From: Selaginella moellendorffii
Taxonomy: Eukaryota > Plantae > Lycopodiophyta
NCBI RefSeq assembly: GCF_000143415.4
Contig: NW_003314357.1
Coordinates: 592,710 to 656,709, forward strand
Reading direction: 5' to 3'
DNA: 64,000 bases
Shown here in pieces: positions 18,743 through 26,440 of this stretch (position 1 is the stretch's first letter; each line of letters starts with the position of its first letter). The notes under the pieces are model-generated. The model saw only the letters and a program-made list of their open reading frames with translations. It did no database searches and had not been told where the DNA came from. A program made the position numbers and the translations under genes.

Positions 18743-20627
18743 ATGGGCGCTAGCGAGAGCAGGGAAGGGCGGCTGGACGATTCCGAGGCCGAGGAGGAGG
18801 AGGAGGAGAATTCCTCCTCGTCACAGGGGAGCTATCACAGCGCTCGCTCCGACAAGGAGAAAACCGGGCCAAGGACTCCATTGCGGCCTCCACAGCCGGG
18901 CTCGCAAAAGGTAAAGCTCTACCACTACATCTCGGCCAAGACCAAGTGGGTCGTCGCGGAGAAGCTGGTGCCATGGGAGTTTATGCGCGAGAGCGAGTTC
19001 CAAGAAGGCAGCGAGGTCGACGATGACGAGTACATGGACGAGGCCGAAGGGAGTGGCCACTTTGATCACTGGCTGCTGTGCGTGGGGACGAGGATCCGAG
19101 CTAAAGTCGACCAGAGGCTCCAGATGAAGTTCTACTCGGACCAGCAGCGAGTCGACTTCGTCTTCCAAGGTGTGTGGGCGATGCGCTTCCCATCCCAGGA
19201 GGACTACAAGGACTTCACCACCGAGTACCACAACTGCGTCTTCGAGAACAGCTACCAGCTCGAGGCGACCGAGGAGAACAAGGTGAAGGTGTTTGGGAAG
19301 GACTTCATCGGCTGGGTGAAGCCTCAGGACGCTGACGAGTCCATCTGGGAGGACGCGGAGGAGACTCTAGAGCAGGGACAGGTCAAAGATCTCAAGCAGA
19401 CTTACATCGACGAGCTCAACGAAGGGATTCGCAGCCTCGCGCTGGGTGCCAAAGACAACAGCTTCCTGGTGAGCGACAGCCGGGTCGAGGCGTTTCGAAA
19501 CACACCCACGGGGCTGCAAGGCAAGAAGGCGTCCGTCCGCCTGGGCGGATCGAGCTCCGACTCGTTCAGCACACCCAAGAAGGCGATGCTCATCCGGGGG
19601 GAGGCAAACATGATGCTGCTCAGCCCGGCGAAAGATGGCAAGAACCACTCCACGAACGTCCGGCAGCTGGATCTCGAGTCGGGCAAGACGGTGGCCGAGT
19701 GGAAGTTTGAGAAGGATGGCACTCCCATCACCATGCGGGATGTGACCAACGACAGCAAGTCGGCTCAGCTCGACTCGTCGCTCTCGACCTTCCTCGGCCT
19801 CGACGACAACAGGCTCTGTCGGTGGGACATGAGAGACCGACACGGAATCGTCCAGGACATCGCGAGCCCGGTGCTGAACTGGAACGAGGGTCATCAGTTT
19901 GCGAGGGGCACGAACTTCCAGTGCTTTGCTTCCACCGGAGATGGAGCGGTGGTGGTGGGATCCAAGGATGGAAAGATCCGGCTCTACGGGAAGACGTCGA
20001 TGCGGCAGGCTAAAACAGCGTTCCCGGGGCTGGGCTCGCCGATCACTCATGTGGATGTGACTTACGATGGACACTGGGTGCTGGGAACCACGGACACGTA
20101 TCTCATCCTCATGAGCACGCTGTTCATCGACAAGGATGGATCCATGAAGACGGGCTTCACGGGGCGGATGGGCAGCAAGGGGCACAAGCTGGCGACGCCG
20201 CGGCTGCTCAAGCTCACGCCGGTGGACGCGTTTGCCGCTGGGAAGAACCAGAAGTTCCACGGTGGTCACTTCTCCTGGGTAAGTTGTTCGTTCGTCTTTC
20301 CTTCCTCTTGAGTTGCTTGGATTCACTCATCGCTTTGGTTTGCTGCTGTCTCAGGTGACGGAGGGTGGAAGGGAGGAGAGGCATCTGGTGGTGAGCGTGG
20401 GGAACTACACCGTGATCTGGGATTTCAAGCGCGTGAAGCAGAGCCAGCACAATTGCTACAAGAACGCGGGGGAGGGGCTCAAGAGCTGCTACTGCTACAA
20501 GATTGTGCCAAAGGAGGACAACATCGTGGACAGTATGTTCATGCACGACAACTTCGTCACTGGGAAATCGCCGGAAGCGCCGCTCATCGTCGCCACGCCA
20601 AAGCACGTCACCTCCTTCAACATCTAG
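18743..20627 (+). CDS. CYPRO4: CYPRO4 / VID27-family protein (2 exons: 18743-20278, 20355-20627)
   Basis: MGASES N-terminus, [50 protein letters not shown]|VTE joined across a 76-bp GT-AG intron. Confidence 0.93.
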
Positions 20628-20856
20628 AACAGGAAAAACGCAACAAATCCATTCGCGGTAAGACTGGAGACTTTTGACATGGGATGGGAGTAGTACGCAC
20701 TCGCGCGCTAATTTCTTGCTCTTTTCTTTGCTGTTTGTAACCAACTAAAGCAAAATTTAATTGTTCTTTTTAAAAGTAAACACAGTTATTTAAAATGAAA
20801 ACTACAGGTTTTAAATTAAATAACGTTATTAGTAATCTAAGAAGCATATTATTAAA

Positions 20857-20881
20857 TGCGGTGAGCGTGGATCGAACACGC

Positions 20882-20924
<43 letters not shown>

Positions 20925-20929
20925 CCCGC
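20857..20929 (-). tRNA. trnF-GAA: tRNA-Phe(GAA)
   Basis: Reverse complement is GCGGGGATAGCTCAGTTGGGAGAGCGTCAGACTGAAGATCTGAAGGTCGCGTGTTCGATCCACGCTCACCGCA, a canonical plant cytosolic tRNA-Phe. Confidence 0.97.
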
Positions 20930-21209
20930 TTAGTTTGATTAACAAAAAACTAGTTTCATATTTAAAGATTTTATTATCATATTCTAGATCTTTTAAAATC
21001 ATAGCAAATTGCTTTCAATGTTTACTGTATTGTACCCATGCGAATCGCATTACATTTCTTTCTATTCCATGCGTTACGGGGTTACACGTGTCAGGTTGTT
21101 TGAGTTTCTCAAAGAAAACCTAGGGCGGAGGAGGAAGAGCTTGGTCGCTTTTGCCAGTGAGAGGGCGCCACCACATTTTCTCCTCCATCTCACTCTCTCT
21201 CGTGTAGCG

Positions 21210-22290
21210 ATGGATCAGCTCCGCGAGATGGCGCACAACATGAGCTCCCTGGCCGCCCAGGGGATGGATTACATCGAATCCAACACGGGCCTCCCGCCGA
21301 TCGTGCTCTTCACCATCATCGCGCTGCTTCTTGGTGCGTATTACCTCATCTCTGGGATTCTTGCTCCATCGCAAATCGGCGCCGCTCCCCTCTCGGCCAT
21401 CATCGAGGAGGAGGAGGAGGAGGCGGCCGCGGCGGCAGCAGCAGCGGTGGATCCTCCCTCGATCGTGGAGCTCGGGGATCAGGTCACTCTCTTGGAGCTC
21501 GCTGCGTACGATGGGAAGGATTCGAGCAAGCCGCTGCTCATGGCGATCAAGGGAACGATTTACAACGTTTCTTCTGCCAGGTACTGTCACAGCTCTCTTT
21601 TCTTCTTCGTGCTTAGATTGATGGATCGTAGATACGTTCTTTTCCTTTCTTGATCGATCAGAGCTGCATTTTTCTTCTTTCCTTTTCGTGCTTGGTGATA
21701 CTATCGCTTATCTTTGCAGGGATTTCTACGGGCCTGGTGGGCCTTATGCCGTTTTCGCTGGAAGAGATGCCAGCCGCGCTTTGGCGAAGATGAGTTTTGA
21801 CGAGGGTGATCTCTGCGGTGATCTGGATGGATTGAGCAGCCAGCAGCTCGAAGTTCTCAAGGATTGGGAGAGCAAATTCGCCAGTAAGTATCCCAGAGTC
21901 GGAGCTGTCAAGCCCAAAAAGGAGGACAAGGTGGTGGACGATTCAAGCATCGGTATGGAGATGGAGGGGGACGAGAAGAAGTACAAGGACAGTGATGAGA
22001 CAAAGAAAAGCCTCGGGGAGAAGGACGATCAGAAAGTTTCCGAGGAACACAAGGATNNNNNNNNNNNNNNNNNNNNNNNNNNNNNNNNNNNNNNNNNNNN
22101 NNNNNNNNNNNNNNNNNNNNNNNNNNNNNNNNNNNNNNNNNNNNNNNNNNNNNNNNNNNNNNNNNNNNNNNNNAAGAAGGCTGGACAAGAACACGACTCA
22201 GAGGACGAGACTACAGTAACAACAGATGCGGGGGTCAGGGATCGATACGACGAGAAAGAGGAGAGCTTTAACTCGTCTTCAGCAGCTTAA
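21210..22290 (+). CDS. MSBP: Membrane steroid-binding protein (MAPR/cytochrome b5-like); exons 21210-21580 and 21720-22290, N gap in the acidic tail
   Basis: N-terminal TM segment, ELAAYDGKDSSKPLLMAIKGTIYNVS, FYGPGGPYAVFAGRDASRALAKMSF, WESKFASKYPRVG. Confidence 0.92.
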
Positions 22291-22565
22291 GCGATGGATG
22301 GATGGATGGATCGATCAGAAGAAGGTTTGGAGCTAAATAATCGTTGGTTCGTGGTAGACGTAGATGTTGTCTAGAATTTGCGTTGTTTTGTGGAGCAGTT
22401 TTGGATTTCCTGTTCATGTGATCGTTTAGATGTGAAGAAATGGAAAAAGTCGCGCTTACTATGATTTGGATAGTGCAAATCTGACTCTTATCAGCTGAAA
22501 CTATAAGAAAAGAGGGAAAAACGTTCCTCATGAAATAGAAGCGAGCAAAAAAACTGTACTTGGAG

Positions 22566-23409
22566 CTATTGGATGCAACATATGTGCTTGGATCCAATAA
22601 GAGGCTTGGGAGGAATCCACGCATCAGCTGGGAGCGATTCTCCTTCCCATGGATCTTCCAAAACCTCAGCAACATATCTGTGAAAGCACTCTGATCAATC
22701 GAGAAATGGAAAAGAATCAGCGCTTACAATTTCACTGGTTCCACTGGCACGTTGTTCTTCTTCACTTTGACCAGCTGCATCTTGTCCAAAACCACGAGCG
22801 AATTCTCCCTCACTTTCCCAAACACCGTGTGCTTTCCATCCAGATGCGGGCTCTGTGCTTCAATGCTGCAAAGGATTTAGAAAATCCAAAGAGAATAGAA
22901 AGAAAAAAATCGGCACTCACGGGCTTGAAGAGAATGAAAAACTGGGAAGCATTTGTGTTGCGACCGAAATTGGCCATGGAGACTATCCCTGTCGCGTCGT
23001 GGTTGTGCCTGGCGGAAATCTCATCGTCAAATCGCGCCCCATAGATCGAGTAGCCTCCTCTCCCAGTGCCTGCCAGGAGATTATAGCTAGAATTTCTCCG
23101 AGCAAGAATTTCACGATCTTGCCTGAGGGATCGCCGCTCTGGCACATAAACCGTGGAACGATCTTCTGCGGAAGAGGAAGAACACTCAGAGACTAGAGCT
23201 GGGGATGAAAGAACGAGCGAGATTACGTGAAATGTGATCCCATCGTAGTATCCCGCCTTGCAAAGCTCCAAGAAATTCCGGCAAGTCCTGCGCGAGGCAC
23301 CGCGATCATCAAAACCCTGCGCGCGATCGATGCTGCCCTACCTTGGCGCGTCCTCCAGGAAGAGATCGATCTCCAAGCGGCCGTGCGTGCAGCACAACAC
23401 CACCGACAT
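22566..23409 (-). CDS. Single-domain cyclophilin-like protein, 6 exons, ending in CCIQ
   Basis: Spliced translation [75 protein letters not shown]...[34 protein letters not shown]...[14 protein letters not shown]; one intron is GC-AG. Confidence 0.88.
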
Positions 23410-23545
23410 TGCCCTAGATAATATTCTCGTGCGAAAGCCGTTACACGTATATTCCTCATAAACGACCAGGATCGAAAGCCTGTAATCAACGGCTCACATC
23501 AAACCTTCAAGAATACTCGATATGCTTAAACAAAAATTCTCTCTT

Positions 23546-24851
23546 CTAGCGCCCCCTCCGGCTGGCATTGATCTCGTTCAAGCTGTTATAGTCATCCACG
23601 AAAGTTTCCCAGGCGGGCTTTCGGCGGGTTTCCTCCTGGATATCGTTCTCGATGGCTTTTCGGATCGGTCGCACCACCAAGAGATACTGCCAATCGATCG
23701 AGAGAAAAACTTTCAAGGTGAATTTGGAGGAGCGAAAGCATTACACATTACCTGTGCGAGCAGCACCAGCGGGATCCAAAGCTTCCCCCTGTTATTCGCG
23801 TTGGGACCCTCGATGAGCTTCTTGTCCACCAGCAGCGATGGGTGCTCGTTGGTCACCACTTCCACGAGCCGTCCCACCAGGTTTGGAACCCACACGGTTC
23901 CATTTGGAAGAATCTGCAAAGAGTTTATCAAAAAGAGTGACTTTGAGAAAGAAAAATGGTTACCTTTTCACCACCAGCATTGGTGCTGCAACGCCCACTA
24001 TTTTCCACGAGAGCGTAAGGTATCTGAAATAGAACAAATCAGCTAAACCATAGAAGAACAAGGATGAAAAGGTCCAGCGTTACATACGTCGGGATCGGTT
24101 TTCTTGAAGCCAGCTTCATGCCTTATAGCCGCTAAGAGCCCCTCGGATCTCTGCTGCACGTAGTCGTCATAGCTAGCACCGTCCGGAGGAGGAAGCTGTG
24201 CGTGAGTTAACACCAGCAAACAAAGCTTCCAGATTTGAGGACCGAAGCTACGAGTGATGGCCCTGATGACTTGTTTGTCGAGGCTATCAACTCGGTAACC
24301 ATCGAGCCGGTCCACATACAAAACCACATCAATAGTTTTGTCCATGAGAAACCTGGGAAAGAAGAAAGTGTCACCTCCAAAAACTAAGGAGAGAACAATC
24401 TTACAAACCTCTTGATAATCTCTAGAGCTTGGTCATTCACCCATCCACCTTCAATCAAACCGGGAGTGTCGATAATGTTCAAAGTAAATCCAGCTCTGGA
24501 CCGTGAAACGAAGAGCGGCCTCAAAGTCTCCGACTGGAGAAAGAAAAAGTCGATTTTGAGAATGCGCGAGATGAAAGAGTAGAATTTACCTGAAAGGCGC
24601 TCACGGCTGCTACTCTCTCACCGATTATAGAATTCACCGTAGAGCTTTTTCCAACTCCACCTTTTCCAAGCACTAGAACAGTCATGCTATCCACATTCTG
24701 CGAGGAGGAAGCGAAATTCTCAAGCACCCGCAAGAAAGAAATTCCTGGAAGAACTAACCTGTTGCCGGACCTTGCCAAGCAGCCCGTGGAGCGCAGTCTG
24801 CGTAGCAACGGGGAATTGGTTAATGCCCGACCATTCCTTGGTGCTTCCCAT
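23546..24851 (-). CDS. TOC34: Chloroplast outer-envelope translocon GTPase Toc34
   Basis: KEWSGINQFPVATQ, VLGKGGVGKSSTVNSIIGE, IIDTPGLIEGG, LYVDRLDGYRVD, VLTHAQLPPPDG, LIEGPNAN followed by a TM segment; multiple short introns. Confidence 0.95.
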
Positions 24852-25119
24852 CCCTGGAGCGGCGACGCGCGCTCAATCGATTGCTCCAGCTGCCAATGTG
24901 GCGCCGCGCGCTTGAATCTAGATCCAAGAATCACGTACCCGGAAGAGAGGAGCCCTCGCGGTCGCGGATAAGGGCAACGCGGTGCCCAGTGGTTTAGGGC
25001 TTTTGAGAGATATTTGCTAGGGAAGATTCGAACCCCAGACCTCTTTACACTACTTACAGACGATCGAACACAAAGTCACAACGCTATGTATATATCAATC
25101 AAAGGGGATTGCCACATCT

Positions 25120-26440
25120 CTATGTGAGATCGTCATCTTCGTCAATCTTGGCCTTCATAGCATTCTTCGCTCGCAGCAGCATTGTGGTCTTCCAGCCATC
25201 CTTGAAAATACAAATTAAGTATCGAGCGAGGAAGAAGAAAACAAAGTCGAGAGAGAAAATATCACAAACATACCAGTCGAGTCATGCTATCAAATTCCTT
25301 GACAACGTCCGTAAACTTCTCGACATCCTCTTGCTCGATCGCCTCGGCTAGATCCTGCAATCCATCGGGAATTGAAAACAAGTCCAAAAGGAGAGGGAGG
25401 GAGAAAACAAAAACACGTTTCTCACCTTAAGAAACTTGTGCTCTCGCGTGTTCGAAAATGTTGGATCCAAGTCCTGCAAAGTTTCATGATTCAGACAGAA
25501 CTCCTGGAGCGAAAACTTTGGTACCTCGTATCTCTCGATGGCATTTTGGATGGCTATATGATCAGCACTACAGAGATGGCACAAACCAGCGCTCAGCAAA
25601 TACCCCTTGACGCTGTACTTCAAGAGATTGTTTCCCATCGAGTCTTTAGCCACTGTCTCGTACACCTCAATAGCTTTTGGATATCTGCAAAAAGAAAAAA
25701 GAGAGATAAGAGGAAAACAAGTGAAAAAAGAGACATTTCTAGCTTACAGCTCGAGTTGGGATGCAAATTGAGCAACCTTTAGTTTACATTGGTTCGCGGA
25801 GCTCGTCACTTCTTCTCCTTGATAAAAGTCGGCAGCTTTTTCATAGCTTTCCATAGCTTCCTGCCACTTTTCTTCCTTTTCGTACAATTCTCCCACATCC
25901 TAAAAGAGTTGGAAAAAAAAAAGTAAAAAAACGCGTTAAGCTGACCAAGAACATTACAAAGGAATTGATAGAAGGTACCTTGAAATGCTTCGCAGCGATC
26001 GATAGCTTTCCCATCTCCAAGAAAATATTAGTCGCGGTATTGAGCGCATTGATCGCATCTAAAGGAAAGGAAAACAAAGAAACGAAGCAGTGTGCTGCGG
26101 AGAAGAATGCGCTATTTTACCTTGTGGCTTGTTTTTCATGTAGCACTTGGCCGCATCAACGTAGCTCGTGGCGGCCTCGTATCGATTATCGAGCTTGACG
26201 TGCATCTCGGCGACCCTGATGAAGCAATTGGCGGCCTTGTCCCCTGGAAAAACCCTGGATTGAGAAAGATGCGCGGAGATCTGGCTCCCAAAACTTACAT
26301 GATTTGGCGACCTTGTAGTGATTCGCAGCTTGCTGCAAGAGCTCCACTGTATCCTCATACTTGTTCCCAAAGAGCCCCCAGCCCTTGAGCTTGCGATCCG
26401 CCTTGCTCTCGAATTCCTTCGCCTTGGCCAGGGCATCCAT
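25120..26440 (-). CDS. ASNAP: Alpha-soluble NSF attachment protein
   Basis: [66 protein letters not shown]-terminal EDDDLT*. Confidence 0.95.

Follow-up and report, generated by a model that had tools for sequence, protein, structure and literature searches.

What kind of cyclophilin is encoded by a short locus of the lycophyte Selaginella moellendorffii, in which the catalytic arginine is replaced by a lysine and the protein ends in a putative prenylation signal? The locus lies on the minus strand, at 23409-22566, of a window of 64,000 nucleotides (nt), which is the whole stretch of DNA that was analysed (NCBI RefSeq assembly GCF_000143415.4, contig NW_003314357.1, positions 592,710 to 656,709); all the coordinates given below are those of the window. 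An earlier note, made from the sequence without database searches, had described here an intact single-domain cyclophilin spliced from six short exons, with Lys in the place of Arg55 of cyclophilin A and a terminal CCIQ, and had suggested a lipid-anchored protein of low activity. The exon-by-exon translation and the frame check of the joined product bear out the description of the gene: its six exons span 844 nt and the predicted product, composed of 185 amino acids (aa) and followed by a stop codon, reads FHK (K44), SPHLDGKH (H110) and, at the C-terminus, SKHICCIQ. This product is identical to P0003, an S. moellendorffii protein of 185 aa bearing the NCBI name "peptidyl-prolyl cis-trans isomerase ppi1" and the Pfam cyclophilin domain PF00160, which corresponds to a called gene over the same 844 nt in GCA_000143415.2 (scaffold GL377661.1).

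The tail-bearing cyclophilins and their CaaX end

The full-length database searches were performed using P0003 as the query and disclosed about 30 proteins of 180-190 residues, aligned over ~100% of the query with scores from 434 down to ~204 bits. The next step down is represented by PPIL1/CYP18-2-type matches, which reach at most 179 bits, cover ~82% of the query and are tailless. A profile (A1) was then built from 23 members, and the search carried out with it enlarged the group to ~77 tail-bearing sequences among the matches listed, numerous of which come from environmental or transcriptome assemblies. The same search also drew in the environmental proteins P0162-P0172, P0181 and P0183 (~320-390 residues); these join a CypA-like domain to other sequence, in many cases with a DCGxL end, and were placed outside the subfamily.

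Within land plants, members are found in liverworts (Riccia, Calypogeia and Marchantia), mosses (Sphagnum, Ceratodon and Physcomitrium), lycophytes (Selaginella and Diphasiastrum), and ferns (Ceratopteris, Adiantum and Psilotum). The other holders are green algae, including prasinophytes (Mesostigma, Pyramimonas, Cymbomonas and Tetraselmis), the glaucophyte Gloeochaete, dinoflagellates (Symbiodinium, Effrenium, Ceratium, Alexandrium, Gambierdiscus, Gymnodinium and Biecheleria), the flagellated amoebozoans Physarum and Planoprotostelium, the breviate Pygsuia, Diphylleia, and the ancyromonad Fabomonas. The orthologs retrieved from transcriptomes (Psilotum, Pyramimonas, Physarum and dinoflagellates) share the architecture of the Selaginella protein. 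No seed plant, animal or fungal sequence was found among the ~77 members or the matches listed, gymnosperms being left out, and the matches from those lineages are of the PPIL1 type; this agrees with the remark of the earlier note that the type is not recognizable among seed-plant cyclophilins. Here and below, statements on absence refer to word-seeded searches in which the best 120 matches were listed.

A phylogenetic tree was constructed using the cyclophilin domain only, with the tail removed to keep it from determining the groups. In this unrooted tree, the tail-bearers fall on one side of a branch with a support of 94 in the Shimodaira-Hasegawa-like approximate likelihood ratio test (SH-aLRT), and the land-plant members form a single clade, also with an SH-aLRT value of 94. 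The PPIL1-type sequences are split off at 99 and the PPIL3-type ones at 98, and the tail-bearers are placed nearer to the latter than to the former. Hence, the group is not part of the PPIL3 subfamily, next to which it stands as a neighbouring separate branch (94 vs. 98 for the PPIL3 type), nor of the PPIL1 subfamily, from which it is divided by the 99-supported split and by His110 in the place of Trp. Moreover, Planoprotostelium harbors a tail-bearing protein (P0153) together with a PPIL1-type one (P0186). On the basis of these sequence comparisons, the tail-bearers can be regarded as a distinct and ancient eukaryotic subfamily of cyclophilins. It appears to have been unremarked so far, its members being stored in databases under generic names; no paper was found in the literature that describes the subfamily, speaks of a farnesylated, prenylated or lipidated cyclophilin, cites the locus tags, or links cyclophilin, cilia and Selaginella.

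The feature that sets the group apart is the C-terminal extension. The segment preceding the CaaX box, DPW-x-G-Q-x-L-P-x-G-A-x-I-P-E-K-P-L, is conserved as much as the active site; the columns P158, P165, P171 and L175 are invariant, and W159, L164, G167, K173 and P174 are conserved in at least 90% of the sequences. At position -4, a Cys is present in 76/77 tail-bearing sequences vs. 7/141 of the other cyclophilins fetched, and these seven include five with the DCGxL end of CypA-type proteins, which is unrelated, and a fragment of a member of the subfamily itself. A chance origin of the CaaX end is therefore excluded, and the comparison indicates that it is a real, selected feature; the persistence of the box in the orthologs was one of the checks that the earlier note had named. 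Its occurrence in several eukaryotic supergroups suggests that the tail is ancient.

As for the type of prenylation, the last residue in the 70 full-length members is Gln in 58 cases, Met in six, Ser in two and Leu in one, while in the alignment of 66 members (A2) an aliphatic a2 (I, L or V) occurs in 59 sequences and X is Gln in 55. Farnesyltransferase is known to favour Q, M, S, A or C as X, and most endings of the subfamily are thus of its type. The Selaginella CCIQ, with Ile at a2 and Gln at X, fits this preference for an aliphatic a2 and a farnesyltransferase-favoured X, and we infer from these sequences that Cys182 is farnesylated and that the protein is located at a membrane. The adjacent Cys183 was also considered as a palmitoylation site and rejected, since it is one of the three aaX residues, which would be cut off in CaaX processing. 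The linker between the KPL motif and the Cys is 5 to 26 residues long, mostly 6-8, and in the green-algal clade it is polybasic; a polybasic linker followed by a CaaX box is the classic farnesyl-plus-basic arrangement. In one prasinophyte-like cluster (P0022 and P0212), an alternative long hydrophobic end is found (...CAFLFVFANRNGRLCYPC), beside a normal KEQC-type isoform (P0211). When the tail alone was searched against the protein atlas, only sub-threshold matches were obtained.

An AlphaFold2 model was built on 66 family sequences and has a mean predicted local distance difference test (pLDDT) value of 89.7. The eight-stranded cyclophilin barrel is predicted with Z scores of 27-28.5 and root-mean-square deviations of 1.1-1.9 over 154-162 residues with respect to solved cyclophilins, and the solved relatives retrieved by fold are PPIL2, CWC27, PPIL3, PPIL1 and PPIL4 (Z 25-28.5). 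The pLDDT is ~95 for residues 151-170, 66 for residues 171-180 and 42 for residues 181-185; therefore, the first half of the tail is predicted to lie against the domain and its end to be a flexible leash, so that the C-terminus would be flexible and accessible, as CaaX substrates require. The structural alignments with CWC27 and PPIL4 extend up to residues 164-177 of the model, and the beginning of the tail would thus resemble the C-terminal extensions of these two proteins.

The lysine at the Arg55 position

The residues of cyclophilin A were mapped onto the 66-member alignment via its well-established conserved motifs. At the R55 position, Lys is present in all ten land-plant members and Arg in 54 of the 56 others; Arg also occupies it in every PPIL1- or PPIL3-type sequence that was inspected. 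The equivalents of H54, F60, M61, Q63, A101, N102, Q111, F113, L122 and H126 are retained in 10/10 land plants, so that, among the pocket positions considered, only that of R55 differs. Over the whole protein, just three positions (T7C, R44K and I149L) distinguish the land plants from the rest of the subfamily. The pattern suggests that the replacement of Arg by Lys is a change confined to land plants and younger than the CaaX tail. Orthologs with both Lys and CaaX are thus a land-plant feature, and outside land plants the older CaaX is accompanied by Arg in nearly all members.

The His at the W121 position, to which the earlier note had also drawn attention, is found in 61/66 members; therefore, it represents the norm of the subfamily and there is nothing special in this respect about the Selaginella gene. 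Similarly, the Phe at the A103 position of the Selaginella protein was rejected as a family feature, this position being variable across the family.

The functional meaning of the lysine can be approached by analogy. The R55K mutant of cyclophilin D is reported to exhibit minimal isomerase activity and to bind substrate peptides with an affinity similar to that of the wild type (PMC7311461). By analogy with this mutant, the land-plant protein probably binds proline segments and turns them over poorly. Since the CaaX is nearly invariant and cyclophilin D R55K retains binding with minimal activity (PMC7311461), the lipid-anchored, low-activity protein proposed in the earlier note is also, in our opinion, the best inference for the Selaginella gene product.

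Gene structure and neighbourhood

The coordinates of the exons and of the residues discussed above are reported in Table 1.

Table 1. Exons, key codons and C-terminal motif of the Selaginella cyclophilin gene (window coordinates).
Feature	Position	Strand	Description
Exon 1	23342..23409	-	ATG at 23409; residues 1-22 and 2 nt of codon 23; GT donor at 23341
Exon 2	23227..23287	-	residues 23-43, ending in GITFH; PF00160 at 26.3 bits
Exon 3	23123..23165	-	residues 44-57; preceded by the cag|aag NAGNAG acceptor, followed by a GC donor
Lys44 codon (AAG)	23163..23165	-	aligned with the catalytic Arg55 of cyclophilin A
Exon 4	22921..23069	-	residues 58-107, starting with GTGRGG; PF00160 at 34.2 bits
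Exon 5	22728..22852	-	residues 108-148 and 2 nt; PF00160 at 29.7 bits
His110 codon	22846-22844	-	within exon 5; Trp121 position of cyclophilin A
Exon 6	22566..22677	-	residues 149-185 and stop; last beta strand and conserved tail
CaaX box (Cys182-Cys-Ile-Gln185)	22569..22580	-	predicted farnesylation signal

The five introns are 54, 61, 53, 68 and 50 nt long, in gene order, and four of them have GT-AG borders; intron 3 (23070-23122) is of the GC-AG type, with a donor, AG|GCAAG, of the usual form. Exons 2, 4 and 5 each exceed, on their own, the curated cut-off of 21.7 bits of the cyclophilin domain PF00160. A search was also performed with the stop-free open reading frame (ORF) 22813-23271 (minus strand), with scoring confined to the residues of exon 4, and it returned three S. 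moellendorffii proteins, including P0003.

The six-exon model is independently supported by two liverworts. The ortholog of Calypogeia fissa (L003:1001-3598) has all five introns at the protein positions of the Selaginella ones (22/23, 43/44, 57/58, 107/108 and 148/149), and its last exon starts at the same residue as Selaginella exon 6. The ortholog of Riccia fluitans (L002:1501-2061) is a single intronless ORF, collinear with the Selaginella product from the start to the CaaX, with FHK and a terminal CCLQ. The last intron and the CCIQ end that the earlier note had read are thereby corroborated. The intronless Riccia copy may have arisen as a retrocopy and taken the place of its parent gene, or may have lost all its introns.

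The NAGNAG acceptor that had been noticed near 23165 is indeed present at the end of intron 2 (23163-23170) and coincides with the Lys44 codon; the distal AG, if used, would remove exactly the residue at the catalytic position. The proximal AG is presumably the main acceptor, because the catalytic position is occupied in every ortholog. The older JGI models P0001 and P0002 (SELMODRAFT_129647 and SELMODRAFT_6722) run through intron 2, omit exon 3 and end before exon 6; therefore, both the active-site FHK with its Lys and the CaaX tail are hidden in them. P0001 is located on a separate 1.5-Mb contig and is probably the second haplotype copy.

The neighbourhood of the gene (18743-26440) is compact. 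A GTPase gene (MMR_HSR1/AIG1) lies upstream on the minus strand, at ~135 nt, and a cytochrome-b5 gene lies downstream on the plus strand, in convergent orientation, at ~275 nt; farther out, there are an alpha-SNAP-like gene (upstream, minus strand) and a VID27-like gene (downstream, plus strand). These called genes gave no hint of a functional link to the cyclophilin gene.

Possible roles and related systems

The explanation that we favour, and to which we assign a probability of roughly 0.55, is that the gene encodes a farnesyl-tethered cyclophilin acting on, or holding, a membrane-proximal client; with Arg, the ancestral protein would have been catalytic, and binding would have become its main activity in land plants. 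The protein would consist of a single cyclophilin domain and a conserved extension of ~30 residues ending in the CaaX box; up to about residue 170, this extension would pack on the domain, like the C-terminal extensions of CWC27, PPIL2 and PPIL4, and the final ~12 residues would act as a flexible leash. Protein farnesyltransferase would farnesylate Cys182, the last three residues would then be cut off and the new end methylated, and the lipid would hold the cyclophilin at a membrane or on a partner that binds lipids. The catalytic Arg would have become Lys at the base of land plants and would have been retained as such since then, all the other pocket residues being unchanged; the land-plant protein would bind Xaa-Pro segments of a membrane-proximal client and isomerise them slowly, working as a holder or adaptor more than as an enzyme.

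Several points weigh against this explanation. The exon junctions are backed by P0003, Calypogeia and Riccia rather than by Selaginella RNA reads, and the tree is the sole basis for considering the Selaginella gene a paralog distinct from canonical PPIL3. As regards the anchor, no experimental report of prenylation of any member of the subfamily was found in the literature; the land-plant linkers are not polybasic and have no clear second signal; the Ceratodon model P0016 ends in KPLIAND, with no CaaX, possibly through truncation or loss; and the Sphagnum protein P0015 ends in CIML, with an X of the geranylgeranyl type. Lastly, Lys44 may retain useful activity in the land-plant pocket.

This last point leads to the idea of a lipid-anchored and fully competent isomerase, in which Lys44 substitutes for Arg and the land-plant change is neutral. 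Lys retains the positive charge, the remaining catalytic and binding residues are intact in the ten land-plant members, and three positions only separate these from the rest of an otherwise unchanged protein. On the other hand, the Arg of 54/56 non-land-plant members and of all the PPIL1- and PPIL3-type sequences inspected shows that the position is normally strongly constrained, cyclophilin D R55K has only minimal activity (PMC7311461), and fixation in 10/10 members without reversion is unexpected for a neutral change; we thus consider full competence unlikely, even though it is the alternative deserving most credit. A nuclear protein of the spliceosome, that is a PPIL3/PPIL1 cyclophilin with a longer tail, whose Cys has some other function or receives a farnesyl group that does not anchor the protein to a membrane, as in some farnesylated proteins of the nucleus, appears improbable. 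It is true that the nearest solved relatives, both in sequence and in fold (S. pombe Ppi1, PPIL3, PPIL1, CWC27, PPIL2 and PPIL4), are all spliceosomal and that the tail begins in a way similar to the DPF-type extension of CWC27 and PPIL4; however, the domain-only tree separates the group from both types, Planoprotostelium has a tail-bearing protein besides a PPIL1-type one, and a Cys(-4) in 76/77 sequences with a farnesyltransferase-type X is characteristic of CaaX processing and not of a redox or metal site. That the last exon or the Lys codon might lie outside the real mRNA, i.e., that the whole matter is an annotation artefact, is very improbable: neither exon 3 nor the tail exon is present in the older JGI models, and the NAGNAG acceptor could in principle bypass the Lys codon, but the five intron positions are kept in Calypogeia, the Riccia copy is intronless and collinear, the transcriptome orthologs have the same architecture, and all the orthologs possess a residue at the Lys/Arg position.

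The taxonomic distribution raises the issue of flagella, to which the earlier note had alluded by speculating on a restriction to lineages with flagellated sperm. The protein might be a lipidated cyclophilin linked to the flagellum or cilium, delivered like prenylated ciliary cargo and lost together with flagella in seed plants and dictyostelids. Every named holder has a flagellated stage, and no angiosperm and no Dictyostelium member appears among the matches listed, in contrast with non-seed plants and with Physarum and Planoprotostelium; within land plants, therefore, the speculation fits. Beyond them it is weakened, since animals, Volvox and Pleodorina among the Volvocales, a chytrid and oomycetes gave only PPIL1-type cyclophilins among the matches listed, and no ciliate, Chara or Klebsormidium member is found there. 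In addition, protists are mostly flagellated, so that the pattern discriminates poorly, and the argument is one of taxon distribution, drawn without the gymnosperms with swimming sperm. The link to flagella is weak, and a flagellar role seems doubtful to us. The broader scenario that can be drawn from it is equally tentative: the tail-bearers would be an ancestral farnesyl-anchored component of eukaryotic flagellated cells, lost repeatedly, among other occasions when seed plants gave up swimming sperm and dictyostelids their flagella, and land plants would have turned the enzyme into a proline-binding adaptor via the Arg-to-Lys change.

Cyclophilins are usually classified by their added domains or targeting peptides. 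In the literature found, the CGEM-type end of CYP22/PPIH is the only cyclophilin motif considered as a lipid anchor, and the tail-bearers would add to it a separate subfamily with a dedicated tail and a CaaX conserved like the active site, across Archaeplastida, dinoflagellates, Amoebozoa, breviates, CRuMs and ancyromonads. If the predicted farnesyl tether is real, so broad a distribution implies that a membrane-tethered proline isomerase arose very early, and its absence from model organisms (Arabidopsis, yeast, animals and Chlamydomonas) would explain the lack of notice. The land-plant switch from Arg to Lys would represent a clean natural experiment in the conversion of an enzyme into a binder, and the Selaginella protein is a further candidate to join the few prenylation substrates listed for non-seed plants.

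Among the known systems, the closest is PPIL3/cyclophilin J (the Arabidopsis CYP18-1 type), which is likewise a single domain of ~160 residues starting with MSV.L.T and carrying His where cyclophilin A has Trp121; of all groups it is placed closest to the tail-bearers in the domain tree, and human cyclophilin J shares 46-47% identity with the Selaginella protein (Z 27.9). Unlike the tail-bearers, which carry a tail of ~30 residues, the PPIL3-type proteins end shortly after IHANP, with no conserved tail or CaaX, and keep Arg55. PPIL1 (S. pombe Ppi1 and plant CYP18-2) has the same fold and pocket; by sequence, the top-scoring PDB entry is S. pombe Ppi1 (E 2.4e-50), and it is from a PPIL1 match that the automatic NCBI name "ppi1" derives. 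It differs in having Trp at 121 and Arg at 55, in being tailless and a component of the spliceosome, and in lying across the 99-supported split; moreover, the PPIL1 type is present in seed plants, where the tail-bearing type was not found among the matches listed.

A third comparison concerns the CYP22/cyclophilin H (PPIH) type, whose Cys, judging from the DCGxL-type ends encountered here and from general knowledge, presumably forms part of the final strand of the domain, with no dedicated tail. The likeness resides in a conserved C-terminal CxxX, for which reviews on plant prenylation name CYP22 (At2g38730, ending in CGEM) as a conserved CxxX protein (PMC12609287, PMC12197051). In contrast with the tail-bearers, CYP22/PPIH constitutes a different subfamily and is present in seed plants and animals. 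A likeness in possible working, rather than in descent, links the tail-bearers to the farnesylated chaperones of the DnaJ/HSP40 type (Ydj1 and AtJ3) and to membrane-anchored plant immunophilins (FKBP42/TWD1): the folds are unrelated (J-domain and FKBP, respectively) and the anchor of TWD1 is a peptide, not a lipid, but in all of them a folding or holding module is mounted on a C-terminal lipid or anchor, and in TWD1 this module is a domain of the peptidyl-prolyl cis-trans isomerase type with no measurable isomerase activity.
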